A DNA stretch of 63,998 bases, filler included, from Octopus bimaculoides (taxonomy: Eukaryota): the NCBI RefSeq assembly GCF_001194135.2. It is 3 parts of 3 records of this genome, joined end to end, with 100 filler letters (N's around TTAATTAATTAA, not from the genome) between each part and the next. Parts side by side here need not be neighbours in the genome. Positions count along the whole stretch, not along the records: positions 28,973 to 59,832 come from NC_069002.1; 2 more parts are not named here. One strand, 5' to 3'. Shown here piece by piece: positions 28,973 through 59,832 of this stretch (positions within the stretch are counted from its first letter, which is position 1; the number at the start of each line of letters is the position of its first letter). The notes under the pieces were generated by a model, which saw only the letters and a list, made by a program, of their open reading frames with translations, was not told where the DNA came from and searched no databases. The translations under genes and the position numbers were made by a program.

Positions 28973-29224
28973 CAAAAGATGATGGGGGACAAATACAGAC
29001 ACACAAATATATATATACATACATATGTATATGGGAGAATTTACGAAAAAAACAACAGACGAGGACAGGTGGTGTAAACAACAAAAGGATGTATTAGTTT
29101 AACGCTCGGGAATAGAGAAAATCTTAAACGTTTCGAGCTACGCTCTTCAACAGAAAGAATAAAGAGAAAACAAGGAGAAAAACACAGAGAAAAAAAATTG
29201 AATGTTGTGGTCAGTGAACTATCA

Positions 29225-30752: not shown

Positions 30753-32203
30753 GTCTAGCCCACCCCACATGTCAACTTTATGTAAATCTATGATCCTGTG
30801 ATCGAAGACATGTGTGACCATTCTGTCTATATTTTTTAGACAATGTATCTAAGACTACATTATTGAATGTGTTTTTTATTTAAGAAGATAAAGTGATATG
30901 AGATTTGACAGCTATTTCTAGCAGGTTAAGTAACCACATAGATGCATCCTTATTGATTTGTTATTGCTGCTGTTTAGCCCCCCCCACCCAAACGTCAGTT
31001 ATCATTCTATCTTTTATCGATTAAGGCTACAAGTGCTAACAGTGTGCCAAAGGGGTGTCTAGGATTTAAAAAAATGTAACTGAAAGATTTTGAAAATCTA
31101 TGCAAATGTTGAAGTGTCTTGAACAATTTGTTAGCCACAATTTTGTTATACGAAAGTTTTGTTAATAAAGTGAGAAGCAATTGTTTTCTATATTTTCTCT
31201 AAATCTTTAACTTTAAACAATGTTTCGTTTTTAACTTCCCATGTGAAGTACACCAGTAATGATAGCAATCCACCTGGGACTGTCCTTCAGTTCTGATACA
31301 AGCTTCCTGTTTTAAAATGATCCAGATTAAAACCTTTCATCGAGATTTCATGTTGTTTAAAACACCAGATTAATTAATTACAAAGTTATTTTATACTCTT
31401 TTACTTGTTTCAGTCATGTGACAGCGGCCATGCTGGAGCACTGTCTTCAGTCGAGAAAATCAACCCCAGGACTTATTCTTTGGATGCCTAGTACTTATTC
31501 TATCAGTCTCTTTTGCCGAACCACTAAGTTACGGGGACGTACACACACCACCATCGGTTGCCAAGCGATGTTGGGAGGACAAACACAGACACACAAACAT
31601 ATACACACACACATATATATATATATATATGTATATATNNNNNNNNNNNNNNNNNNNNNNNNNNNNNNNNNNNNNNNNNNNNNNNNNNNNNNNNNNNNNN
31701 NNNNNNNNNNNNNNNNNNNNNNNNNNNNNNNNNNNNNNNNNNNNNNNNNNNNNNNNNNNNNNNNNNNNNNNNNNNNNNNNNNNNNNNNNNNNNNNNNNNN
31801 NNNATATATACGACAGGCTTCTTTCAGTTTCTGTCTACCAAATCCACTCACAAAGCTTTGGTCGGCCCGAGGCTATAGTGGAAGACACTTGCCCAAGATG
31901 CCACGCAGTGGGAATGAACCCGCAACCATGTGGTTGGTAAGCAAGCTACTTACCACACAGTCACTCCTGCGCCTATGTTAATTATTTTCAAAATTAACTG
32001 AAACAAAAGCAGTGTATTTCAACAGAAATGAGGAAAGGTTTAGTCTTCAGTTTGCTGCAAAGTCAGAAGGACTGGAATCACTGTAGCACAATGTGATTTG
32101 AAGGTGATGTAGGTGCTATTTTAGCAGGTTAAGCAACTACATAAATGCTCCCCTCATTAACTAATCATAGCTATAGGTGTCATTGATGTTGGTTGGTGCT
32201 TAC

Positions 32204-33349: not shown

Positions 33350-33808
33350 ACGTCTGGCATCCATGCCAACGTCGTCTCCCTCATTGGACACAAAACTCAG
33401 CTTGCGAAGACTTATTGGGGCAAGCGATAGCAAAATTGTGATGGCACCTGTGCCCAGCGTCGCCTTTCTGGCACTTGTACCTGCAGCATATGTAAGGACT
33501 TTCAAGTGAGATCGTTGCCAGTGCCCCTGGACTGGCTCTTGTGCGGGTGGCACATAAAATACACCATTTTGAGCGTGGCTGTTGCCAGTACCGCCTGACT
33601 GGCCTTCGTGCCGGTGGCATGTAAAAAGCACCCACTACACTCTTTGAGTGGTTGGCGTTAGGAAGGGCATCCATCTGTAGAAACTCTGCCAAATCAGATT
33701 GGAGCCTGGCGTAGCCATCTGGTTTCCCTAGTCCTCAGTCAAATCGTCCAACCCATGCTAGCATGGAAAGCGGACGTTAAACGACGATGATGATGATGAT
33801 GATGATGA
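33350..33808 (+). mobile_element. RTE-tail repeat family copy
   Basis: Same sequence family, with (GAT)n tail at 33786-33808. Confidence 0.85.
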
Positions 33809-34337: not shown

Positions 34338-34690
34338 ATCATCATCATCGTTCATCATCATCGTTTAACGTCCGCCTTCCATGCTAGCATGGGTTGGACG
34401 ATTTGACTGAGGACTGGTGAAACCGGATGGCAACACCAGGCTCCAATCTAATTTGGCAGAGTTTCTACAGCTGGATGCTCTTCCTAATGCCAACCACTCA
34501 GAGAGTGTAGTGGGTGCTTTTACGTGTCACCCACACGAAAACGGCCACGCTCGAAATGGTGTCTTTTATGTGCCACCCGCACAAGAGCCAGTCCAGGGGC
34601 ACTGGCAACGATCTCGCTCGAAGGATTTCGTGTGTTGACCGCACATGAGCCAGTCCAGGGGCACCGGCAACGATCCTGCTCGAAAAACCT
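34338..34690 (-). mobile_element. RTE-tail repeat family copy
   Basis: Reverse-complement copy with CATCAT tail at its left end. Confidence 0.85.
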
Positions 34691-37600
34691 CCTAAAGAAC
34701 ATCTTTAAAAGTACAAGTTAAATTTATTTAGGACTGGAACTATCGTATTATTTCATGTTTAGGAAGGCCAACATTTAATAGGGTTGAATATTTATTCGAT
34801 GGACTCACAAATATCAGAAGACAAGCATTTCAAAATAACAACTGTGAACTCCATTCTGTTCAGAAATAGCAGGTGGGTCACATAAAAAATGTGAACATCT
34901 GTAAATTGTGTGATGGTGCCATGAGAAATGCTTCTATATTGTGGCAGTTGCATAATATAGAAAGAAGTGTAAAACTGATAACTATATAATCCAACCAAAA
35001 TATTTCAGTTATGCAAATGTAAACAGAATTACTATTTAGCCTCAAAATACATTGTACATATTCAAAGAACCTTCTTGGTTTAACGGTATGGAACATTCTT
35101 CCAGTATTCTTTTACTTGATTTAGTCATTTTATGGTGACCATGCTGGAGCACTGACCTTTAGTCAAAGAAATCGCCCCCTGGACTTATTCCCTGTAAGCT
35201 GGGTGCTTATTTTATCAGTCTCTTCTGCTGAACAGCTAAGTTATGGGGACGCAAACACACACACATAAATATATACATATGACGGGCTTCTTTCAGTTTC
35301 CGTCTACCAAATTCACTCATGAGGCTTTGGTCAGCCCGCGGGTATAGTAGAAGACACTCTTTAAAGTATAGAGTTGAATTTCGTGTAGCCACCTGTTGAC
35401 AACTTTTCTCCCCCACTCATTTTGTAGGAGGTATTACCCATTTTTCTGGGCTCTTTTCACAGCTATGCCCCATTTGAAATTTGCATTAGTTTTTGTATGA
35501 AAGAATAAAAAAAGGGAGTAAGGCTTGTTTGTTGTTTGCAGAGAAAACATCAAACGTGCCTGAGAAAAAAACATGGTCTTTCCTTGCAATTAAAAGACAT
35601 GATGAACTATGAAAGAAAGTGATTAAGTACCAGGGGTTGGGAAAGAAGAGAGAACTAACACTCGATTGTTCTAGAACTCCCAGAATGAAAACGAAAACAC
35701 CTGAAAGACTTAGCCTCTATTCATTACTGTCTTTCTCTCTTCTTCATTATTAAAAGAAACTAGAAAAGTCGATCGTATCTCAGTCTAATTGTCATTGTAA
35801 ATGACTGATGCTTTCCTTTCTCTGTCTCTATTGCTTCACTCCTTTTCTCTACGGTTAAGAGAGTGAAGGTGCATGGCTCAGTGGTTAGGGGTATTTGGCT
35901 CACAATCATAAAGTCATGAGTACGATTCCTGGCAGTGCGCTGTGTTCTTGAGCAAGGTACTCTACTTCACTTTGCTGCAGTCCACTCAGCTGGCAAAAAT
36001 GAGTTGTAGCTATAATTCAAAGAGGCCAGCCTTGTCACATTCTGCGTGAGAGTGAATCTCCCTGAGAACTATGTTATGATATGCATGTCTGTGGAGTATT
36101 CAGCCACTTGCACGTTAATTTTACGAGCAGACTGTTCCGTTGATCAGAAAACAGAAACCTCATTGTCGTAAGCGACAGAGTACCATTTTTTAAAAAAGAG
36201 TGAAAGAAGAGGAAATGTTTCATATCATAAGGCAAAAATGTCATGTGTTTAGTATAAGCAGTGAAAGCTAAGATGAAATAATTGCTATTCTGTTATGCAT
36301 TCACTCTCAACTCATGCTCAGTTTGATAACAACAACCTGCACATCAGTGTTTATCTGGTGGGGTTGGCCTCCAGATCTGTGAGACCCACAAATGCTGCTG
36401 TTAGGACCAGATTAATACCCATAGTGACCCTAACGACTGAAAAGATTTTCCTGCCCCTATATAGGATCTTTTTTCATTTTCTTCCAACAACTTGAAAATT
36501 TATCTTCCTTCAGTCCATTCAGCTGGCCAAAATGAGTTGTAGCTGTAATTGAAAGGGGCCATCCTTGTCATATACTATGTGAGGCTGAATCTCCTTGAGA
36601 ACTATGCTAATAGTATGCATATCTGTGGAGTACTCAGCCACTTGTGAGTTAATTTTACCCACGTGTGGTAATGAAAAATGAAAGTGACATCCAATATTTG
36701 CTGTAGCTATTTGTCTTTAACAATGCGTCAATGTAACTATGTATCAATTTTTCTTTCGATCTATGTATCTACTGTCTCTCTCACTTTCTCTTTCTCTGGG
36801 TCCTTCCTCTCTCTCACTTGTAATTTAACAATGTGTGGATGTATCTAGGTATCAACTTTTCTTTCGATCCATCTATCTACTATTCTTGTGATGTGATAAA
36901 CATTTAAAAACAAAACGAACACCGTCACCACTCACTGTCTCACTCTCTCTCTCTCTCTGTCCTCTTCTCTCTCTCACTTCACCACTCACTTCTTCCTTTG
37001 AAGGAAGTGTGACACACACCACAGGTACGTACAAAAAGAAAACTAGCTGGACCCGTGAAAAATTCACAGAAAGTATAAAAAATGTAAGCATCTGTAAATT
37101 GTGTACTGGTGCAATGAGAAATGTTTCTATATTGTGATAGTTAAAGGCAGCGTGAGATGCTTAGCGGTATTTCGTCTGTCTTACATTCTGAGTTCAAATT
37201 CTGCCGAGGTTGACTTTGCCTTTCATCCTTTTGGGGTCGATAAATTAAGTACCAGTTGCATATTGGGTTCGATCTAATCGACTGACCCTGCTTCCCTAAA
37301 AAATTTCAGAAATTGTGCCTATAGTAGAAAAGTATATTGCAACAGAATATAGAAAGAAGTGTAAAACCGATAACTATATAATCCAACCAAAATATCTCAG
37401 TTCCACAAACATGAACAGAATTACTATTTAGCATTAAAATACATCGTACATATTCAGAGAACCCTCTTGGTTTAGTGGTACGGAATGTTTTTCTTGGATT
37501 CTTTTACTCTTTTACTTGTTTCAGTCATTTGATGGTGGCCATGCTGGAGTCCCACCCTTTAGTCGAAGAAATTGACCCCTGGACTTATTCCCTGTAAACC

Positions 37601-39239
37601 TGGTCCTTATCCTATAAGTCTCCCCTGCTGAACAGCTAAGTTACAGGGACACAAACACACCAGCATCGGTTGTCAAGCAATGGTGGTGGTGGTGGGGGGG
37701 ACAAACACAGACACACACACACACACACACACACANNNNNNNNNNNNNNNNNNNNNNNNNNNNNNNNNNNNNNNNNNNNNNNNNNNNNNNNNNNNNNNNN
37801 NNNNNNNNNNNNNNNNNNNNNNNNNNNNNNNNNNNNNNNNNNNNNNNNNNNNNNNNNNNNNNNNNNNNNNNNNNNNNNNNNNNNNNNNNNNNNNNNNNNN
37901 NNNNNNNNNNNNNNNNNNNNNNNNNNNNNNNNNNNNNNNNNNNNNNNNNNNNNNNNNNNNNNNNNNNNNNNNNNNNNNNNNNNNNNNNNNNNNNNNNNNN
38001 NNNNNNNNNNNNNNNNNNNNNNNNNNNNNNNNNNNNNNNNNNNNNNNNNNNNNNNNNNNNNNNNNNNNNNNNNNNNNNNNNNNNNNNNNNNNNNNNNNNN
38101 NNNNNNNNNNNNNNNNNNNNNNNNNNNNNNNNNNNNNNNNNNNNNNNNNNNNNNNNNNNNNNNNNNNNNNNNNNNNNNNNNNNNNNNNNNNNNNNNNNNN
38201 NNNNNNNNNNNNNNNNNNNNNNNNNNNNNNNNNNNNNNNNNNNNNNNNNNNNNNNNNNNNNNNNNNNNNNNNNNNNNNNNNNNNNNNNNNNNNNNNNNNN
38301 NNNNNNNNNNNNNNNNNNNNNNNNNNNNNNNNNNNNNNNNNNNNNNNNNNNNNNNNNNNNNNNNNNNNNNNNNNNNNNNNNNNNNNNNNNNNNNNNNNNN
38401 NNNNNNNNNNNNNNNNNNNNNNNNNNNNNNNNNNNNNNNNNNNNNNNNNNNNNNNNNNNNNNNNNNNNNNNNNNNNNNNNNNNNNNNNNNNNTTATACAC
38501 ATCAATAAATGAGCCAATTGAACAACTCTGTGTGGTTGTTCAATTTGCTAGAAATAACAGCCAAATCTCTCTCATACTATGCCATTGTTAGTATTAAGGA
38601 AAGGGAAAAAATAGAATTAATATTTTTGATTTCCTTTGGCTCTATGTATTTAATTTTTCTTTTAAATGTTTTCGTCCATTACTTGATACAAGAAAAAAGA
38701 AATTGGAAAAATCCTGACCAAAACAGAGAAATTGTGACATAACAAAAAATACAGAAAGAGAAAGAAACGGTTGAATTTGAAAGCCAAAAGATGTCTTTTT
38801 AGCTGAGGTGTAATATTATAATTAAAACAAATTCAAAATTTAAATTTCAGAACATAAGCCTTACCATGTTATCTGGTGTATGACCGAATTCAAACGGGTA
38901 GAAGACCTAAAACAAATGCATGTGTGTGTGCGTTTGTAGTTGGGCCTTTAATAGCCAGGGGTCAATTTCAGTCTAATTGTAGAAAGGAAATCAAATACCT
39001 ATCAGCCACTCCCTCTCTCCTTTACCTAACACACATCAAATTTAAGTATCTTAATTTTCTCATTAAAATCATTGCTGCTTTGGTGGCCCAGTAGGCATGG
39101 GTGTTGAGAAGTAGTAATACAACACATAGGTAGTGGTTTCAAATCTCTTCCAGAAATTATAAGTGATCTAGTTAAGAATTTTTATTTAAGCAACAAAATT
39201 TTTTTTCATTAAGCATGACACATGCGTCAAGTACATACA

Positions 39240-41070
39240 AAAAACAAACTGGCATATTAATATTATTGAGAACTGTCTTAACAAATGCAGAAATCTCAGT
39301 TCTGGATGGATTGATTATAAAAAGGTCTTGAAATTGCTGGATATCTTCAAAATTTCTCCTGTAGTAATTTCAAACTTCCTGAAGTACAACATGTCAATGT
39401 GGGAGACAAATCTCCAATTATACTATTCTAATGGAGTACTGACCACAAAAAATACTAATATCAACTGCAGCATTTTCCAAGGTGACTCATTTTCACCTTT
39501 AATTTTCTGCATAGCCCTAATACCCCTTACAAGTGAACTTAACAAAACAGGGTATGGATATAAAATTGGTGATAAGAAAATAAGTCATCTATTTTATATG
39601 GATGACTTAAAACTCTATGGTAAAGACGATAATGAGCTTGAAGGATTACTATGTTCTGTGAAAGCATTCAGTGATGACATTGGGATGGAATCTAGTCTTG
39701 ATAAATGCGCCAAGGCCACTTTCCAGAAAGGGAAACTGAAGATCTCACATTCAGTCATAAAAGAACTTGAGGAGGAACAAACTTACAAGTACCTCAGAAT
39801 AAATGAGGGCTCTGGCATTCAGCATGCAAGCATGAAAGGGAAGATCAGGAAGGAGTATTACAGGGGAGTTCGAGCAGTCCTAAAATTCAAGTTAAATGCA
39901 CGTAACAAGGTGTTAGCTATGAATTCCTTAGCAGTTCCACTTGTTATTTACAGTTTCCATGTGTTGAAGTGGAATATGAGCAAAATAAGGAAGACTGATA
40001 GGAAAACCTGTAAGCTGCTGACTTGCAATAAGATGCACCACCCAAAGGCAGACGCAGATCGTCTCTACCTTCCCAGAGCTCAAAGAGGTCGAGGCTTGAT
40101 CCAATATAAAATCTTTTACAAAGCCACCAGAACTGGACTGACAAAATATCTTGAAACATCTAACCACTGGATGCTAAAGCTCCATTCTGTTATGAAGGAG
40201 AACAAAAAATTTTCAAGTGAGTTGATGCATAATACTCAGGTTGAACAGCATGAGGTAAGTATAGCAAATGTTGTTGGAAAAGAAGGTGAAATCAATAGCA
40301 AAGTAAAATGCGCTCGAACAATTGGATGATAGGTGGGAACAAAAACCTCTGCATGGCAAATATGTGGCCCGTAGCAAACAAGTTGATGTAGACCAGAAGC
40401 ACACCCATCAGTGGCTACAGAGCTCAGGGGTAAAGGCAGAGAGTCAAGGCTTTATCTTGGCTACCCCAGATCAGAGGTTACTGACCTAATGTGATGAAAA
40501 TGGTGTAGACCCAAAGTGCCAATACTGCAACTATAGGATAGAAACAGTTGACCACCTAATCTCTGGGTGTAAGGTTTTAGCACCTGTAGAGTACAAATCA
40601 AGACATGACGGCGTTGGCCAATGTCTACATTGGATAATGTGTCGGCATTATAAAATCAAAACTTCTGACAAATGGTACAAGCACCCCACTGAGGCTGTAA
40701 CTGAGGGAGAAAATGTAACTATTCTTTGGGACTTCCCAGTATGTACAGACCAGACCAGACCATAAAGGCAGATAAACCAGATATTGTTGTGAAAGACAAA
40801 AGCAATTAAGTCTATTTATTGACATGAGCATACCCTGTGACCATAATATCTCAGCAAAAGAATTTGATAAGCTCAGAAAATATAAGATTTGCTAATTGAA
40901 ATCGAAAAGATGTGGTATCGCAAGACCAATGATTGAAGGAGCACTTGGAAATGATCAAAAAAGGAATTGAAAATTATTTAAGAATGATCCCTAGCTTATC
41001 ATCCATGCAGGAAGTGCAAAATATCATCTTAACTCATACCTCACACGTATTGAGAAGAACATTGTTAGTG
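39240..41070 (+). mobile_element. 5'-truncated R4/Dong-like non-LTR retrotransposon (RT, CCHC knuckle, restriction-like endonuclease), disrupted
   Basis: ORF 39328-40329 has IFQGDSFSPL and SHLFYMDDLKLY. Downstream frames give CQYCNYRIETVDHLISGC and KPDIVVKDK, with stops and frameshifts. Confidence 0.85.
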
Positions 41071-42637: not shown

Positions 42638-42792
42638 TATGTATTTCTTCTATCTTAATGAATAAAAATTCTTCGGATAGAATAAATGGGTTAATAGAAA
42701 CCAATGTAGCAAAGAACACAAAATAACTGTGGTGTAGTTCCTGTTTTTANNNNNNNNNNNNNNNNNNNNNNNNNNNNNNNNNNNNNNNNNNN

Positions 42793-42960
42793 CATATGTT
42801 TCAAAGGATTACAACCTGTGTGATCCATAGGGATCTGTGATATTAAAATTGTAACCTTCTCTTCAGGGATGATTCCCGTGAATTCCCTGAAGAGAAGGTT
42901 ACAATTTTAATATCACAGATCCCTATGGATCACACAGGTTGTAATCCTTTGAAACATATG
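42793..42960. repeat. Perfect 77-bp inverted repeat with 14-bp spacer, abutting a gap
   Basis: 42793-42869 is the exact reverse complement of 42884-42960. Confidence 0.92.
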
Positions 42961-43350: not shown

Positions 43351-43650
43351 TGCGAGCGAGATCGTTGCCAGTGCCCCTGGACTGGCTCTTGTGTGGGTGG
43401 CACATAAAATGCACCATTTTGAGTGTGGCCGTTGCCAGTACCGCCTGACTGGCCTTTGTGCGGTTGACACGTAAAAGCACCCACTACACTCTCGAAGTGG
43501 TTGACATTAGGAAGGGCATCCAGCTGTAGAAACTCTGCCAAATCAGATTGGAGCCTGGTGTAGCCATCCGGTTTCACCAGTCCTCAGTCAAATCGTCCAA
43601 CCCATGCTAGCATGGAAAGCGGACGTTAAACGATGATGATGATGATGATG
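43351..43650 (+). mobile_element. RTE-tail repeat family copy
   Basis: Same family; tail ends ~110 nt from the SNX8 exon donor at 43762. Confidence 0.85.
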
Positions 43651-43884: not shown

Positions 43885-44381
43885 CTGGAATGAAATGGAA
43901 AATTGTTTACGATTCAAAGTTTAAAAATTTTATACAATTAGAAACTATTTTTTGAAAGCCTACAAAGCTGCAAGATTTATTTTATGTATATACATATATA
44001 TAATTTATTCCAACTCAAAAAACTTTGAAGTCCTTCACAATGTTTAAGTTGACATATTCAGTTGGAATCAACATAAGAGACAAAATTCAAATTAATAAAT
44101 TCACAGGCGAAGTGAACCAGAAATATCAACAAATACCATGATGTATTTTTTATTGATACTGGTCTATCTATTCTATCTCCTGCCTCCCACCCACAACTGA
44201 CTCTCTCTCTCTGTTTATATATATGAAAATATAATTGTCACTAAATGTGACTAAGGATGCCAAGACACCTACATTGCTAGAAATAGAAGCTAAAATGCTA
44301 TAATGCTGTAGGAAAAGCACATAATTGCATACATATATGCTCACAAGAGCTGTAATCGCCCAAAAACACTGACTTGAGAAT

Positions 44382-44434
44382 TCCCTATACCGAATGTTCA
44401 GTTTCGGCTATTTCTGTAGCCTCTTCAGTAAGGA
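44382..44434 (-). ncRNA. Type I hammerhead ribozyme motif, structurally complete
   Basis: Minus strand: TCCTTA CTGAAGA GGCTA CAGAAA TAGCC GAAA CTGA ACAT TCGG TA TAGGGA. Stem I 6 bp, stem II 5 bp, stem III 5 bp, core CUGANGA/GAAA, GUA cleavage triplet. Confidence 0.85.
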
Positions 44435-44566
44435 CTGCTCATTAGGCTGTTTCTACGCTTACTCCACCATCAGCACATATGCATTTACCATAAAAATTTA
44501 TGGATGATTAAGTGAATTGCTAATGTGTATACAAAAATTAGTATAAACAGCCATGCGCAATGTGTT

Positions 44567-44729
44567 CATCATCATCATCGTCGTTTAACGTCCGCTTTCC
44601 ATGCTAGCATGGGTTGGACGATTTGACTGAGGACTGGTGAAACCGGATGGCAACACCAGGCTCCAATCTAATTTGGCAGAGTTTCTACAGCTGGATGCCC
44701 TTCCTAACGCCAACCACTCAGAGAGTGTT
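44567..44729 (-). mobile_element. Short RTE-tail copy inserted into the HHR tandem repeat
   Basis: Same family; possible GTGTT duplication at 44562-66 and 44725-29. Confidence 0.8.
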
Positions 44730-44866
44730 AGCATAAAAGAAAATATAGTTTTCACTAAATGTGACTAAGGGTGTCAAGATATCTACATTGCTAGAAGTAT
44801 CTTATTTCAAGCAATGGAAATTTTGACACCTACAATGCTCTGATGCTATAGGAAAAGCATATATTA

Positions 44867-45002
<136 letters not shown>

Positions 45003-45159
45003 TGTACAGATTTTATATATTAAGAAAAAAGAGATAAACAGAATTTTGGATAATTATTTATTCAGCACTTTCATCTTACTTTGGGGAATCATCAGAAATT
45101 ATTCTTTTACAGAAAATTTATACCTTTTATGCCATCATCATTATGTGTGTGTGTGTGTA

Positions 45160-47198
45160 TTAGGTTGTCTCACATGAAATGTTGCACTTGAAAAAGGAAA
45201 CATTAAAATTGTTTTTAAGTTTTAGAAGATTTATTTATTTAATAAAAAAAATGTGATCCTTGATCATTTATGATCTTCATCCAACGTTCCTCTAAGGCAT
45301 CTTCAAAGAACTTGTCATCTGATAAACTGTTTGAAAGCTTCAATTACCTCTTCCTTATTTAAGAATGTTTTATTGCGGATAGCAAACTCGAAGTGTTTAA
45401 ATATGTGATAATCAGTAGGAGAGATATCAGGAGAATAAGGAGGATGTGCCAAAATTTCCTAATTCAGGCTTTGCAACTTGTGGACGTAGCTTGAGAGGTG
45501 TGAGGCCGTGCATTATCATGAAGCAAAATTGAGCCATCTCTAGTCACTAATCTGGGTTGCTTCTTTGTTAATTTTTTGACCCGCTGGATGTGTAATGTCA
45601 ATATGCATACACAACAGAGTGTAAGTGCCCTGAGAGAAAAGTTGGGCATAAGAAGCATCAAATGTGGTGTGCAAGAGAGATGATTGCACTGGTATGGTCA
45701 TGTGTTACGTATGGATGAGGACAGCTGCGTGAGGAAGTGTCACTCCCTAACTGTGGAAGGAACTTGTGGAAGAGGTAGACCCAGGAAGACATGGGATGAG
45801 GTGGTGAAGCATGACCTTCGAATATTGGGCCTCACAGAGTCAATGACAGCAGACCGAGACCTTTGGGGATACACTGTGATTGAGAAGACCCAGTAACTAA
45901 AGTAAGATGGTAGCCACGCATGTCTGGCCCAAACAAGAGTACCCCTGTGGTTTCGTGCAATATGATATGCTTGAGAAGACCTGTTGAGTCAAGTAAAACC
46001 AATATCGTAGCTGTGGCCAATACCCACTGACTGGCTCCCATGCCGGTGGTACGCAAGAAGCACCATCCGAATGTGACCAATGCCAGTACTCCCGACTGGC
46101 TCTCATGCTGGTGGCTCGTAAAAAACACCAACCGAATGTGGCCGATGCCAGTACTCCCTGACTGGCCCTTGTGCCAGTGGCACATAAAAAACACTATCCA
46201 AATGTGATTGGTTCCAGGCCCGCCTGACTGGCTCCTGTGCCAGTGGCACGTAAAAAGCACCCAGTACACTCTCAGAGTGGTTCGTGTTAGGAAGGGCATC
46301 CAGCTGTAGAAACATTGCCAAATCAGATTGGAGCCTCCAAACCTCAGTCAAACCGTCCAACACATGCCAGCATGGAAAATAGACGTTAAATGATGATGAT
46401 GATGCATACAATCAACTACCTGGCAACAGGATGTTGTTGTTATAGTTTTTCTTTGTTGCAAAAATGAATAATGAATAACCCCCTTTGTTGACCACCATAC
46501 AGTGACCATCAATTTTTTAGGATGCAATGGTGGCTTTGGGTAGTGTTTTGGTGACTCTCCTGTGTCTAATTATTGTCTTGTCCTCCTGCTGTTATCAAAG
46601 AGTATCCATTTCTCAAAGCACATAATGAGTCAGTACAAAAATGGTTCTCTTTCCAACCGAGAAATCAACATGAAACGTACTGTAAGGTGTCTGTTTCTTC
46701 GAATCTCATATTTTTTGACTTTTCCAAGTTTCTTCAAGTGTCAAGAAGCAGTTGTGGGAGATGTCTGGAGCTCTGATCCGATTTTTCGTACCATTGTTCG
46801 CGGAATTCGTTTAACCAAGGCATTCAATTCCTCATGCCAGATAACTGATTTTGGTCTCCCTCTTGGTTCATTTTTAAGGCTTTCATTTCCTGAACGAAAT
46901 CTATGGAACCATCTCTGAACAGTTCTAATATCAACAGAATCATTACCAAAACCCCACTTGATGGTCCATAGAGCTTTGGTGGCAGAGTGACCCAACTTGT
47001 ATTCGTACAAGAAAATCACTTGGTATTGTTCAGTTGTCATAAGAGCTGTGTGTAGCAATTTTGAATAATAGTATTGTCTAGAAAAAGAAGACTTGAGAGT
47101 AAACACAAGCATATACACAGAAACTCATTAAAATCCATTTCTAGATGACTCATAAAAAACCCATTTATAATAGGACATTTCATGTGAGACAACCTAAT
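45160..47198 (-). mobile_element. Near full-length mariner transposon (DD34D), inactivated, split by an RTE insertion
   Basis: ~24-bp TIRs TTAGGTTGTCTCACATGAAA(A)TGT with TA duplications at 45158-59 and 47199-200. Transposase remnants FLYEYKLGHSA..TVQRWFHRFRSGNESL, LLHDNARPH, HPPYSPDISPTDYH. Confidence 0.92.
45581..46404 (+). mobile_element. RTE-clade LINE 3' fragment with 3' UTR and (GAT)n tail
   Basis: Encodes LHWYGHVLRMDEDSCVRKC..GRGRPRKTWDEVVKHDL, then a repetitive UTR and a GACGTTAAATGATGATG tail. Confidence 0.85.
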
Positions 47199-47936: not shown

Positions 47937-48326
47937 ATTTTTTCTGTAAAAACCTATTTTCACATTAAATGAGTCAACTTCCAGTACGAATGTTTACGTT
48001 TTGTATGTCTTTTTTTAACAAAAAAAGTTTCTAAATAATTCTGGAAACAATCTACTCATACAATTTACACACCCAGGTAGATTCAATGTGACAAGGCTTC
48101 ATCTTTGAAAGTGTTTGCTCATAGACATACTGTAAAAACCCATGTAATTTACGCACTTTTTTTCGCAAAAATAAAAATAAACTTTAGTGGGTGTGTAAAT
48201 TGTATGAGTAGATTGTTTCCAGAATTATTTAGAAACTTTTTTTGTTAAAAAAAGACATACAAAACGTAAACATTCGTACTGGAAGTTGACTCATTTAATG
48301 TGAAAATAGGTTTTTACAGAAAAAAT
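47937..48326. repeat. Perfect 139-bp inverted repeat with 112-bp spacer
   Basis: 47937-48075 is the exact reverse complement of 48188-48326, including homopolymer lengths. Confidence 0.9.
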
Positions 48327-52267: not shown

Positions 52268-52963
52268 ATAAAATAATCTTCAACAGGGTTGCTTATTATG
52301 ATAGAAACAACAGGGATCATGAGGTATTTTCTGAGGCATATAACATACTAAACAACCATACCAGATACATTTTTTTTTTTTTTTTTCAAATTATACTAGT
52401 GTAGCAATTTCAGATTATTTCAATCACATTCAGTTGACCTCTTAGTAACTTGAAATTATATTCATATTAAGAGGGAGAGGCAAGGATGAAATATATTTCA
52501 AATTACCCTCAGAGGTAATTTGAAATTGATTTCATCCTATCCCTATGGTTTTAGATTACTCCCTCAGGCTCTTCTCCCAAATGTTCATCACCTTGGTGGC
52601 AAAAAAAGTGTGTTTCCAATGTGTGTGTGCATGTGTTGGATATATGTGTGTAAATCACAAAGAGTTTTAAGCATCCACTTTGTTAGTTAAAGTTGATAGA
52701 AGTCGTATTTTAAGTGTATAAATATATTTCTTGTATAATAATTGTGTATGAATATATTTTGTTTTATTCTTTTACTTGTTTCAGTCATTTGACTATGGCC
52801 ATGCTGGAGCACCGCCTTAAAGGGTTTTAGTCAAGGAAATCAGCTCCAGTATTTATTCTTTGTACTTATTCTACCGGTTTCTTTTACTGAACCACTAAGT
52901 TATGGGGACATAAACACACCAGCATCAGTTGTCAAGCGATGACGGGGGTACAAACACAAGCAT

Positions 52964-53006
<43 letters not shown>

Positions 53007-55211: not shown

Positions 55212-55405
55212 CTGGCTTGTGATTTCATATTCAACATGTTTTAATATTAAACCTTTCTTTTCAGGCACCAGTTCAACTTTAATGTTTTCGAGGTCATACA
55301 ACTCAGAGTATGTATAATTAAGAATTGTTGGAGACATGTCTCGTCTTAAATGAATGCAGAAAGCTTTCAAATCAGCTAAATCACCGAGTGTGGGTTTGGG
55401 TAGTT
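55212..55405 (-). CDS. SNX8: SNX8 exon (pre-PX segment and PX start); first SNX8 exon found
   Basis: tttcag acceptor, gtaatt donor, 194 nt, phase 1-0. Encodes LPKPTLGDLADLKAFCIHLRRDMSPTILNYTYSELYDLENIKVELVPEKKGLILKHVEYEITSQ; VELxPEKKGLxLKHVEY is characteristic of SNX8. Confidence 0.95.
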
Positions 55406-56666
55406 CTGAAATTGAAAATTGAAAAGATAATAATAATAATCATCTCTATTATAGACACAAGGGCTGAAATTTGGGGGAGGGGAATATATCGACCCCAGTG
55501 TTCAACTGGTACTTAATTTATCGACCCTGAAAGGATGAAAGGCAAAGTTGACCACATCGTAATTTGAACTCAGACCATCAAGATGGACAAAATGCTGGGA
55601 GAGAGGATTAGTCGATTACATCAAACCAGTGCATAACTGGTACTTATTTAATTAATCCTGAATTTGAACTCAGAATGTAGCAACGGCCAAAATACTGCTA
55701 AGCATTTCATCCAACATGCTTACGATTCTGCCAGCTCACTGCAACAAGCTGCATTAAACTGCATCCAGTGATGAGGCTTATGTTTGGGAGTTCTGGATTT
55801 GTGGGGAGGATGAAGTTATCCCTTAATTACCATTACACCCAGGTGTGTTCTGACCTGGAACAGTAGTACCTGTCAGGGTCTGATCATACGTTAACCTTTC
55901 AACATCTTTCATAAAGCAACCACTCTTATTCTCCCCCCTCAGCCAAGGAGTTTATTTAGTTTAGTAAGTTACAAGGCAAATTCACTAGTATTGGTGTCAT
56001 GAAAACATGCACCAAGTACACATGTAAAGCAGTTGGTGTTAGGAAAGACATCAGTTGTAGAAAACATACCAAAATCGACACAGTGGAGCAAGACAGTTCT
56101 CCAGCTTGTTTCCATGCTGGAATGGTTAACCCATGCCAGCATGGAAAGCAGACATAAAAATTATGAAAAATACAATCAGCTCTGGTAGAATTCGAATTCA
56201 GAATACAGAACACTGAAAAGATTTGATTTGCTACTCCATGTTTACTGCAGCTTTACTCATACAATTAATTGATGATTCACCATCTTTCAATGGTAAACTA
56301 ATTGTACCTACGTTGGCCTTATAAAAGCCAACGAGAGACTACTCAGAGAATGTCTAAGTAGTCAAAATTGATTACAGGCCTGTTCAATCAGACTCAGCCT
56401 GAATTAACAGGTCTAACATGTTCTTTTTTAACATGATAAGGTGTGATTTGAAGGAATCTACCTGCTATTTCTAGCAGGTGAAATAACCAGATAGAGGCTC
56501 TCTCATTGGTTCAAGCAGTCTAAGTAATCATAAGTGGATTACAGGACACCACAGACATCTAAAACTGATAAACCATCTGAGAAGATATAATTTTGATGGG
56601 GTCATTTCATGATATTTTGAGGTTTAATGTTGGATAAAGGGTACTAAACCCTTACTGAGATGAATA

Positions 56667-56968
56667 TCATCATCATCATCGTTTAACGTCCGCTTTCCAT
56701 GCTAGCATGGGTTGTACAATTTGACTGAGGACTGGTGAACCAGATGGCTACACCAGGCTCCAATCTGATTTGGCAGAATTTCTACAGCTGGATGCCCTTC
56801 CTAATGTCAACCACTTCGAGAGTGTAGTGGGTGCTTTTACGTGCCATCGGCACGAGGGCCAGTCACACGGCACTGGCAATGGCCATGCTCAAAATGGTGT
56901 ATTTTATGTGCCACCTGCACAGGAGCCAGTCCAGTGGCACTGGCAACGATCTCGCTCGAATGTCTTTA
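56667..56968 (-). mobile_element. RTE-tail repeat family copy
   Basis: Same family in reverse complement. Confidence 0.85.
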
Positions 56969-57453
56969 CACAACATAAATACCAGAAATCCTGATCACAG
57001 TCTTGTATCTTTTACTTGTTTCATTCATTGAATTGCAACCATGCTGGAGCACTACCTTGAAGGGTTATAGTTGAATGAATTGACCCCAATACTTATTTTT
57101 TTTAAGGCTTGTAGTGTTTTCTATCATTCTCTTGTGCTGAACTGTTAAGTTATGGGGATGTAAATAAACCAACAGCAGTTGTCAAGCAATTGTAAAGAAC
57201 AAAGACACACACAACAGGCTTCTTTCAGTTCCCATCTACAAATTCCACTGACAAGACTTTGGGCAGCCCAAAACTACAGAAGACACTTGTCCAAGTAGTT
57301 ATGCAGGGACTGAACCTGGAATGGTTTGGCTGGGAAGCAAGCTTCTTACCAAACTGCCATGCACTGAAAATTTTATATAGGTCTTGGAGGAAGTTAGATA
57401 CAAAAAAAAAAGTTTTGAATGATTAATCTCTATTTTTTTATCAACTGTATCTG

Positions 57454-57486
<33 letters not shown>

Positions 57487-59166
57487 TGTATGCAAAGGTA
57501 TGGTTGCATTGCTAGAAAGTTTGCTTCCCAACCATGTGGTTTCAGGTTCAGTTGCAGTGCATACCTCAGGCAAGTGTCTCCTACAATAGCTCAAACCCAA
57601 CCAAAGCTTTGTGAGTACAATTTGGTAGACATACATACATTCACATATATAGGCGCAGGCATGGCTGTGTGGTAAGAAGTTTGCTTTCCAACCACATGAT
57701 TCCAGGTTGTCTTATTGCATGGCAACTTGGGCAAGTGTCTTCTAATATAGCCTTTGGGCTGACCAAAGGAAAGGTGGATAGGTAGGGAAATGTGCTAGAC
57801 TGAAAAGTATGTGATAGATAATGATATCAATAATTCTACTTTTGGCACAAGGCCAGCAATTTTAGGGGATTACATCACTCTCTAGACTGGTGCTTTATTT
57901 TAACAACCCCAACAGGTTGAAAGACAAAGTTGACCTCAGTGGAATTTGAACTCAGAACACAAAGGGCTGAAATGCTAAGCATTTTGTCTGATGTGTTATC
58001 AATGCTGTCACCTCACCAACTTAATAATAAGCATGTCTACAGTTGCAGCTACCTTATGTGTCCCAAGCTACAACTTCTCTATGCCTGAACAGCTATAGCA
58101 AGCTAGTGACTCTATCATGCAATTATTTTTCACTGATAGAGTTGGCCACACAGATAATTACAACAACCTTTAACTGACCTTGTTAAAGAAAGCCTAATAA
58201 CAAAAAGACAAAATAACTTATACACAACTGCTAAGGAAATCCCTCTGGTATTGCACTGACATATTAAACTTTGAAGCATAAAAGTTCAAAAGATAAGAAA
58301 TGATCACTAAAAGTCAAGAGTTATGAACAAGGAAAAATCAATTTATAAATGGTTTTATTGTTTTCAGTTACATATTTTATTCTATTATCACATCATTAGT
58401 TTTACGACAGTTTTACAATAGGCTTTAAAGATTATTAACAATACAGAGAATATCATTATTACAATAGTGACAGTGTAGAAACTACCTTTGTGGCATTCAG
58501 TTAAAGCTTTGTTTGTTCTGAGTTCAAATCCTATGGAGATCAGTTTTGCTTTTCACCCTTTGGAGGTTAATAAAATAAAGTACCAGTTAAATACACATCA
58601 TGATTTAATTAAGTAACCCTACTTCTTTGAATGTTGCCTTGTGCCTATGAAAGAAATTATAACATAAATTATCACATAATAGATGCAACATAGCTGTGTG
58701 ATTAAGAAGTTTGCTTCCAAACCATGTGGTTTTGGATTCAGTCTTACAGCATGACACCCTGGACAAGTGTCCTACTAAAGCTCTAGGATTACCAAAACCA
58801 TCTGAGGGAATTTGGTAGCTGGAAACTAAAAGAAACTTATCATATATGATACATTTATATATAAATATGTATGTTTACATTTGCATTCTGCAGAAGCTGC
58901 TCATTTCCAATGACACTGCTATTGCTGTTGCTTCATCCGTCAAATCATTTAGTTGTTTTGTGCCTCCAAAATGTGATCTTTTATTTGAAATACAGGTAAG
59001 GTTTACCAAAAAGGAAAACCATAGCTGTCACTAAATATGATTAGGGTGTTAGAAGCACCTACATTGCTAGAAATAAGAGATAAAATGCTCTAATGTTGTA
59101 ATCAAAACAATTGTATACATATATACTGGTAGGGACTATAATCGCCCGAAAACACTGATCAAGAAT

Positions 59167-59216
59167 TCTTTATATTGACGTCAGTTTCAGCAATTTCCAT
59201 TGCCTCGTCATAAGAA
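59167..59216 (-). ncRNA. Degenerate hammerhead motif, same family
   Basis: Minus strand: TTCTTA TGACGA GGCAA TGGAAA TTGCT GAAA CTGA CG TCAA TA TAAAGA. C3 is lost and stem III has a mismatch. Confidence 0.7.
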
Positions 59217-59394
59217 TTTATGGATGATTTAGCAAATCACGAATGTGTATACATAAAATTAATATAGACAGTAGTATGCAATGTTTACCAAAAAGGAAAA
59301 TCGTAATTATGTACACATTAGTGATTTGCTAAATCATCCATAAATTCTTATAGTGATAGAGAATTCAGTCCGGAATCTGCTGAAGTCGAGCCAG

Positions 59395-59445
59395 TCTTTA
59401 CTGATGAGGCAATGAAAATTGCCAAAACTGACATCAGTATAAGGA
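59395..59445 (+). ncRNA. Type I hammerhead motif, same family as 44382-44434, with G12-to-A core substitution
   Basis: TCTTTA CTGATGA GGCAA TGAAAA TTGCC AAAA CTGA CA TCAG TA TAAGGA. All three stems pair; position 59424 is A where G12 is required. Confidence 0.8.
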
Positions 59446-59800
59446 ATTCTCAACTGATGCTTTCGGGCGATTATAGTTCCTACCAGTGTATATATATATA
59501 TATATATATGTACACAATTATGTGCTTTGACTACAGCGTTAGCGTATTTTAGCTCTTATTTCTAGAAATGTAGGTGTTTCTAACATCCTAGTCATATTTA
59601 TATTCTTTAGCTTGTTTCAGTCATTTGACTGTGGCCATGCTGGAGCACCGCCTTTAGTTGATCAAATTTACCCCAGGACTTATTCTTTGTAAACCTAGTA
59701 CTTATTCTATCGATCTCTTAGGCCGAACGACTAAGTTACAGGGATGTAAACACACCAACATCAGTTTTCAAGCAGTGAAGGGGGGACAAACACACACACA

Positions 59801-59832
<32 letters not shown>

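Follow-up and report, generated by a model that had tools for sequence, protein, structure and literature searches.

Is the hammerhead motif at positions 44382–44434 of this stretch of the Octopus bimaculoides genome part of a living retrozyme, the relic of an element that once carried such a ribozyme, or a chance likeness in an unrelated repeat? A preliminary description of the window, a stretch of 63,998 nucleotides (filler included), had placed the motif in a tandem monomer of about 350 nt and had proposed a retrozyme-type family. We analyzed the piece at positions 28973–59832 (30.9 kb), in which the copies of the unit that we examined amount to 3.4. The evidence set out below leads us to conclude that the repeat is probably a fossil, non-coding, and non-autonomous retroelement of ~350 nt that is retrozyme-like, was mobilized by Penelope-like elements (PLEs), and descends from a founder with one type I hammerhead per unit.

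Repeat Units at Two Loci

The sequence at 44225 had been described as recurring at 44739, and self-BLAST agrees: positions 44219–44285 match 44733–44799 with 86.6% identity over 67 nt (E = 1e-17) at an offset of 514 nt, and a second match between the same pair of units joins 44290–44323 to 44830–44863 (85%). The claimed period of about 350 nt also stands, and it comes to 351 nt once a 163-nt retroposon tail (44566–44728) is taken out. The repeat is missing from the Tandem Repeats Finder results, the longest period there being 500. The full unit at this locus (locus A), which we call A1, is 349 nt long and lies on the minus strand at 44213–44561 (nhmmer E = 3.4e-106). Read on the ribozyme strand it starts with ATTGC and ends with TAAAC, and these ends were set by comparison with a copy at the second locus (copy B) and by two unit-to-unit junctions. 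Upstream of A1 is a partial copy, A2 (44729–44865, minus), which was recovered by BLAST, nhmmer (E = 5.6e-29), and alignment and which comprises the 3' ~135 nt of the unit. A2 has a 26-nt internal insertion, its final 4 nt are found at 44562–44565, and it is 5'-truncated and without the ribozyme region.

Homologous monomers at 59.0–59.6 kb were likewise part of the preliminary description, and nhmmer recovers them (E = 3e-89 and 2.5e-85). Unit B (59001–59282, minus) shares both of its ends, 5' and 3', with A1 and has lost about 50 nt. Directly upstream of B is a stub that consists of the final 20 nt of a unit (59283–59302, minus), with the junction AAAC/ATTGC between the two. Unit C (59303–59600) is on the plus strand; its 5' truncation falls near unit position 30, and on the 3' side it is cut by a SINE (59601–59802). 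B and C are thus inverted head to head, with their 5' ends abutting near 59302, and are not in tandem. Using nhmmer with a family profile, we identified four family members in the 30.9-kb piece (A1, the partial A2, B, and C) and no further diverged copies. Exact-pattern scans of metagenome contigs and prokaryotic genome contigs, sets that do not include the source species, returned no further copies, and a profile search of a 5.8-billion protein set, again without the source species, gave no match to the conceptual translations of the unit.

The GC content of the unit is 35%. As had been claimed, no ORF is present in or around the copies, in which the longest stop-free stretch is 79 codons, and neither a poly(A) tail nor a terminal inverted repeat was seen in the copies. 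The picture of a tandem monomer bearing a hammerhead holds, with some caveats: there is a ~350-nt unit and A1 contains a complete hammerhead, but the tandem at locus A amounts to only ~1.4 units, its partial member A2 has no ribozyme, and the 59-kb copies are inverted.

The sequence that splits locus A (44566–44728, minus) is, by alignment, the 5'-truncated 3' tail of a retroposon with a (TGA)n end and is placed 4 nt before the A2/A1 junction. It is 95–97% identical to 34352–34508, 43486–43648, 33637–33799, and 56666–56825, and in a multiple alignment it stops at AGAGTGT where the other copies run on. Both this tail and the SINE at 59601 arrived after the unit insertions. The same retroposon family contains a 66-nt internal tandem repeat, present in 3.7 copies at 46016–46261 and also found at 33535–33632, 34540–34684, and 56811–56960. 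The SINE family, which contains the sequence TTGTTTCAGTCATTTGACTGTGGCCATGCTGGAGCACCG, has copies at 31390–31595, 37502–37707, 52761–52966, 57008–57190, and 59601–59802, each followed by a (CA)n/(TA)n microsatellite; the last of these copies is the one that truncates unit C.

A Type I Hammerhead in Unit A1

Both strands of the piece were scanned with a descriptor of the type I hammerhead, consisting of CUGANGA, helix II, GAAA, helix III, U-H, and helix I, with minimum lengths of 4, 3, and 5 bp for helices II, III, and I, respectively. The sole match is a complete type I hammerhead in A1, at 44382–44434 on the minus strand (read from 44434 to 44382), and when one core mismatch is permitted the only added match is the homologous site in C. 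In A1, helix I is UCCUUA/UAGGGA (6 bp), the core is CUGAAGA with C3 at 44428, helix II is GGCUA/UAGCC (5 bp) and is followed by GAAA, and helix III is ACUGA/UCGGU (5 bp) with the loop ACAU. Helix I is open and helices II and III are closed by loops, which is the layout of type I. The type I core requires C3-U4-G5-A6-N7-G8-A9, G12-A13-A14, an A15.1:U16.1 pair, and an H17 that is not G; all of these are present in A1 (CUGAAGA ... GAAA ... GUA/U) and not in B or C. Cleavage is predicted after A17 (44388), between GUA and the U at position 1.1, and this predicted site corresponds to unit position 174, with CGGUA upstream and UAGGGAAUUC downstream. Because helix III has 4–5 bp and a tetraloop, a monomeric ribozyme is expected. 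Helix I of A1 is a plain 6-bp stem, and its extension past a G.A mismatch is not kept between A1 and C. Folded as a circle, the unit is only modestly stable (MFE −84.5 kcal/mol, z = −2.05 versus shuffles, 56% of bases paired).

Could the hammerhead be a chance look-alike within an unrelated interspersed or satellite repeat? Some results are compatible with this: no Rfam hammerhead model reached its gathering score in a search of the whole piece, and the ribozyme fold of A1 (−13.2 kcal/mol) competes with an alternative fold (−17.2 kcal/mol) that is 4 kcal/mol more stable and in which CUGA of the core is paired instead to the helix III 3' strand. However, the complete descriptor appeared only once among 300 dinucleotide shuffles of the whole piece (0.003 per shuffle), and small-range searches with the Rfam Hammerhead_3 model gave sub-threshold matches at 44396–44440 (minus, 21.9 bits) and 59389–59433 (plus, 31.5 bits, E = 8.9e-5 in a 671-nt search) relative to a cut-off of 48.5 bits, the latter E value also speaking against chance. 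The RAGATH-1 hammerhead model aligns weakly to A1 in the type I register, with 14.9 bits versus a cut-off of 56.3.

Other registers were considered and rejected. In the type III register of the Hammerhead_3 alignments, a GUC lies 4 nt upstream of CUGA and helix I is reduced to a 4-nt linker (CUUA/UUUA); this register is without helix I and is therefore not a ribozyme. A type I register that uses the GUC in AAGUC/AGUG exists in copy A only and has no helix I partner, and another, with helix III ACUGA/UCAGU, puts a forbidden G at position 17 and again has no helix I partner. The register that we retained combines GUA/U with ACUG(A)/(U)CRGU as helix III and has three helices in both A1 and C.

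Decay of the Ribozyme among the Copies

The ribozyme of C (59395–59445) differs from the required core by a single change, G12 to A, by which AAAAC stands in place of GAAAC, and its helices have 6, 6, and 4 bp. A remnant is found in B (59167–59216), where C3 is lost, pair 15.2:16.2 is a C:A mismatch, and the ~50-nt deletion sits just upstream of the motif. Judged by these core mutations, the ribozymes of B and C are dead, and the one intact ribozyme among the three copies is that of A1. In the majority consensus of the three copies the core is intact and all three helices are present, and the ribozyme therefore belonged to the founder. Conservation of the hammerhead, to which the preliminary description had attached weight, is accordingly seen in the consensus core and helices but not in the individual copies, two of three being mutated in the catalytic core.

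Standard pairs occupy 91.7% of the pair cells across the three copies, compared with 29–44% when the partners are slid. A single double change, U:A/A:U, is found in helix II, and A1 gains one more pair, A:U, in helix III; covariation is not significant (147 of 500 shuffles) in a comparison of only three related sequences. The motif is no better conserved than its surroundings, with 73–84% versus 71–82% in the rest of the unit, and A1 and C are 76.5% identical in the motif and 73.7% identical across the unit. Both the more stable alternative fold and the absence of extra conservation in the motif fit neutral decay after insertion. The same lack of extra conservation, along with the covariation result, would also suit a chance look-alike, but a three-helix arrangement with 0–1 core changes has been inherited by a copy that is ~26% diverged (A1 versus C), and the host unit resembles known hammerhead repeats in size, composition, and insertion style. 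We consider it very unlikely that the motif arose by chance.

Boundaries of the Unit and Layout of the Insertions

On the ribozyme strand, A1 ends in TATAAAC and is followed by (AG)6 at 44201–44212, and B ends in GGTAAAC and is followed by unrelated sequence. The first base of A1 (ATTGCGCAT) is preceded by the end of A2 and that of B (ATTGCATAC) by the 20-nt unit end, with AAAC/ATTGC at both unit junctions. Since the same 5' start and the same 3' end occur in two independent insertions, the repeat is a discrete ~350-nt element rather than an arbitrary slice of a satellite. The unit ends are ~175 nt from the predicted cleavage site; the inserted copies were therefore not primed at a ribozyme-made 3' end, and their ends were not set by ribozyme processing.

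The order at locus A is a 5'-truncated copy and then a full copy. At locus B/C the full copy has the 20-nt stub upstream, and a copy that is inverted and 5'-truncated adjoins this upstream end. The partial tandems are A2 plus A1 and stub plus B. Microsatellites are found at the borders of copies, including a (TG)n(TA)n(TAGA)n tract (44866–45003) at the 5' truncation point of A2. Layouts described for PLEs include partial tandems that form pseudo-LTRs and an inverted 5'-truncated copy beside the upstream pseudo-LTR (PMC8557442 Fig. 2), and PLEs favor microsatellites (PMC8557442). By comparison with that figure, the insertion architecture of both loci is of the Penelope type. Copies within a locus are more alike (A1/A2 81–85%, B/C 82%) than copies from different loci (66–78%), which fits one insertion event per locus. 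The copies are 15–34% diverged, and the divergence of 15–19% within loci indicates that the insertion events are old.

The ~600-nt palindrome formed by B and C, with arms that are 82% alike, would also be expected of a foldback or MITE-type DNA transposon in which B and C are the long inverted arms. Such an element is extremely improbable here: the unit at locus A is in direct, partially tandem order, a direct unit junction precedes B, C has lost 5' sequence that B retains, and neither a target-site duplication nor a short terminal inverted repeat was seen.

Other inverted repeats occur elsewhere in the piece. One with 100% identical arms of 139 nt and a 112-nt spacer (47937–48075 / 48188–48326) is an assembly artifact or else a foldback or MITE-like structure of very recent origin. 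Another, perfect over 77 nt and with a spacer of 14 nt (42793–42869 / 42884–42960), directly abuts a run of N at 42750–42792 and has the look of a palindromic misassembly at the edge of a gap.

Surroundings of the Copies

Attachment of the repeat to a Penelope ORF, a point raised in the preliminary description, was looked for, and none was found within or next to the copies. No reverse transcriptase (RT) or GIY-YIG ORF lies within, between, or beside the copies, and the 31-kb piece contains no Penelope-like ORF. The sole RT in the piece is represented by its C-terminal half, in a 333-aa ORF at 39328–40329 (plus) that is ~4 kb away (Pfam RVT_1, E = 3.7e-10, motif FYMDD) and whose closest homologs in the 5.8-billion protein set are only 59% identical.

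These observations bear on a reading in which the copies form no separate family and are plain fragments, solo or with internal deletions, of the pseudo-LTRs of an autonomous PLE. The pseudo-LTRs of PLEs are the normal site of the hammerhead, PLE insertions yield tandem and inverted layouts such as those at our two loci, and Xenopus retrozymes are related in sequence to PLE pseudo-LTRs, all of which would be in its favor. Yet two independent insertions contain the whole unit, from the ATTGC start to the TAAAC end, and then unrelated flank, the space between A2 and A1 holds only a 163-nt unrelated retroposon tail, and coding sequence for RT or GIY-YIG is absent nearby. We find it distinctly unlikely that the copies are such fragments and favor a separate, non-autonomous element of PLE type.

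A conserved exon at 55212–55405 (minus), with a tttcag acceptor and a CAG/gtaatt donor, encodes 64 aa that are sorting nexin-8-like (best database identity 72%). This sorting nexin-8-like (SNX8-like) gene probably has the copies in its introns or close to them, and the hammerhead of A1, which is on the same strand as the exon, could be sense within the pre-mRNA if the intron reaches there. An exon-like stretch at 58883–58996 (plus), with a ctgcag acceptor, a CAG/gtaagg donor, and 34 open codons, stops 5 nt short of the 3' end of unit B and is on the strand opposite to the SNX8-like exon. To the right of locus A is the remnant of a mariner-type DNA transposon (45168–47118, minus), with the terminal sequence TTAGGTTGTCTCAC at 45168; it contains transposase fragments and a Mos1 HTH_48 domain at 46741–47118, and it is interrupted by a copy of the (TGA)n-tailed retroposon whose tail splits locus A.

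Comparison with Known Hammerhead Repeats

Metazoan retrozymes are described as derivatives of the pseudo-LTRs of PLEs (bioRxiv 10.64898/2026.07.22.740005). Units of non-LTR retrozymes are ~150–450 bp long, have a GC content below 45–50%, are non-coding, and are without LTR, PBS, and PPT; the units described here are 349–351 nt long, have a GC content of 35%, and contain no ORF. The non-LTR retrozymes of mussels are repeats of 350–390 bp, and elements of the same kind occur in many other invertebrates (PMC7229834). In Mytilus galloprovincialis they range from dimers to large multimers with about 5000 ribozyme copies, their self-cleavage has been shown, and their circular RNA is abundant (PMC7229834). 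The octopus unit shares with the M. galloprovincialis retrozymes a non-coding sequence of ~350 nt, a low GC content, and one type I hammerhead per unit, and its plain helix I in A1 resembles the Mytilus motifs, which are without the archetypal loop 1–loop 2 contacts (PMC7229834). Unlike in Mytilus, we find 1.4 units and an inverted pair with one intact ribozyme, and the comparison between the two is one of anatomy. On the best reading, the octopus element is of the same kind as the metazoan "non-LTR retrozymes" of mussels and hence of a kind already known in molluscs. We found no description of octopus or cephalopod hammerheads or retrozymes in the literature, and it is plausible that the octopus family is undescribed.

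The octopus unit is also like Sm-alpha of Schistosoma and satellite 2 of the newt in being a short repeat that encodes a type I hammerhead. The hammerheads of these two repeats, the first studied by Ferbeyre and coworkers in 1998 and the second by Epstein and Gall in 1987, are reportedly active in experiments. Both repeats are ~330 nt long and are dispersed as well as tandem, and the newt satellite 2 motif, which has a helix III of 1–2 bp, works as a dimer. The octopus motif, a predicted ribozyme, differs from that of newt satellite 2 in its helix III of 4–5 bp with a tetraloop.

The arrangement of the copies is close to that of PLE pseudo-LTRs and non-autonomous PLE derivatives, in which a full copy is preceded by a 5'-truncated one and an inverted copy, itself 5'-truncated, abuts the upstream end (PMC8557442; bioRxiv 10.64898/2026.07.22.740005). 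As in hammerhead-bearing PLEs, there are microsatellites at the borders and the hammerhead is inside the repeated part (PMC8557442; bioRxiv 10.64898/2026.07.22.740005). In contrast to PLEs, the element is ~350 nt in all and has no RT or GIY-YIG ORF, and in contrast to PLE pseudo-LTRs, the segment duplicated at locus A (the 3' 135 nt) excludes the ribozyme. PLEs occur in octopus genomes, where they underwent an expansion at a Jukes-Cantor distance of about 0.2 (PMC13282606, PMC8967140).

A Proposed Cycle and Its Present State

In the cycle that we propose, a transcript with at least two units on the ribozyme strand would self-cleave after GUA in each unit. Cleavage would free RNAs one unit in length, bearing a 5'-OH and a 2',3'-cyclic phosphate, that a tRNA ligase could circularize, and a Penelope-type reverse transcriptase and endonuclease would copy the unit RNA into the genome. 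The outcome of this copying step would be a full copy preceded by a 5'-truncated one, or a 5'-truncated copy in inverted orientation. Given that locus A has a single ribozyme and locus B/C has two apparently dead ribozymes on opposite strands, the cycle cannot run here, and because no two consecutive units have complete ribozymes, no monomer or circle would be released at these loci.

The retrozyme-type family of the preliminary description therefore survives in its anatomy, that is, in a non-coding unit with 35% GC, an ancestral hammerhead per unit, and Penelope-type layouts, but not in the consecutive complete ribozymes of a working array. Active retrozymes are recognized by two or more successive units with a complete hammerhead in each (Li et al. 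2026, bioRxiv 10.64898/2026.07.22.740005), whereas locus A has 1.4 units with one ribozyme and the units of locus B/C are inverted and both mutated. A living retrozyme would have longer arrays elsewhere that are transcribed and processed to ~350-nt circular RNAs. The ancestral unit with its complete type I hammerhead argues for this, as do A1, which still has every known core feature, and the unit size, GC content, and partial tandem structure, which agree with retrozymes; in addition, the presence of two loci within 31 kb suggests that copies may be numerous. All copies seen are nevertheless old, at 15–34% divergence, the ribozymes of two of the three appear dead, and a tandem ribozyme pair as defined by Li et al. 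is found at no locus. We regard a living retrozyme as rather unlikely, and prefer the reading of a fossil element.

That the family is alive elsewhere in the genome seems unlikely to us, and we are equally doubtful of an undescribed cephalopod retrozyme family with multi-unit arrays elsewhere, ~350-nt hammerhead-processed circular RNAs, and the fixed ends ATTGC...TAAAC. If such a cephalopod family did exist, reverse transcription would start at a specific internal site of the circle or multimer and not at the ribozyme-made end.

For annotation, the repeat in this piece is to be treated as a decayed, hammerhead-bearing, non-autonomous element of PLE type and not as a functional ribozyme gene. 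Its unit ends and Penelope-type layouts can be set directly against the cleavage site of the ribozyme. If the family should be abundant and active, it would bring cephalopods into the range of hammerhead retrozymes and their circular RNAs and would provide a clean case for the proposed origin of animal retrozymes as non-autonomous derivatives of Penelope-like elements.
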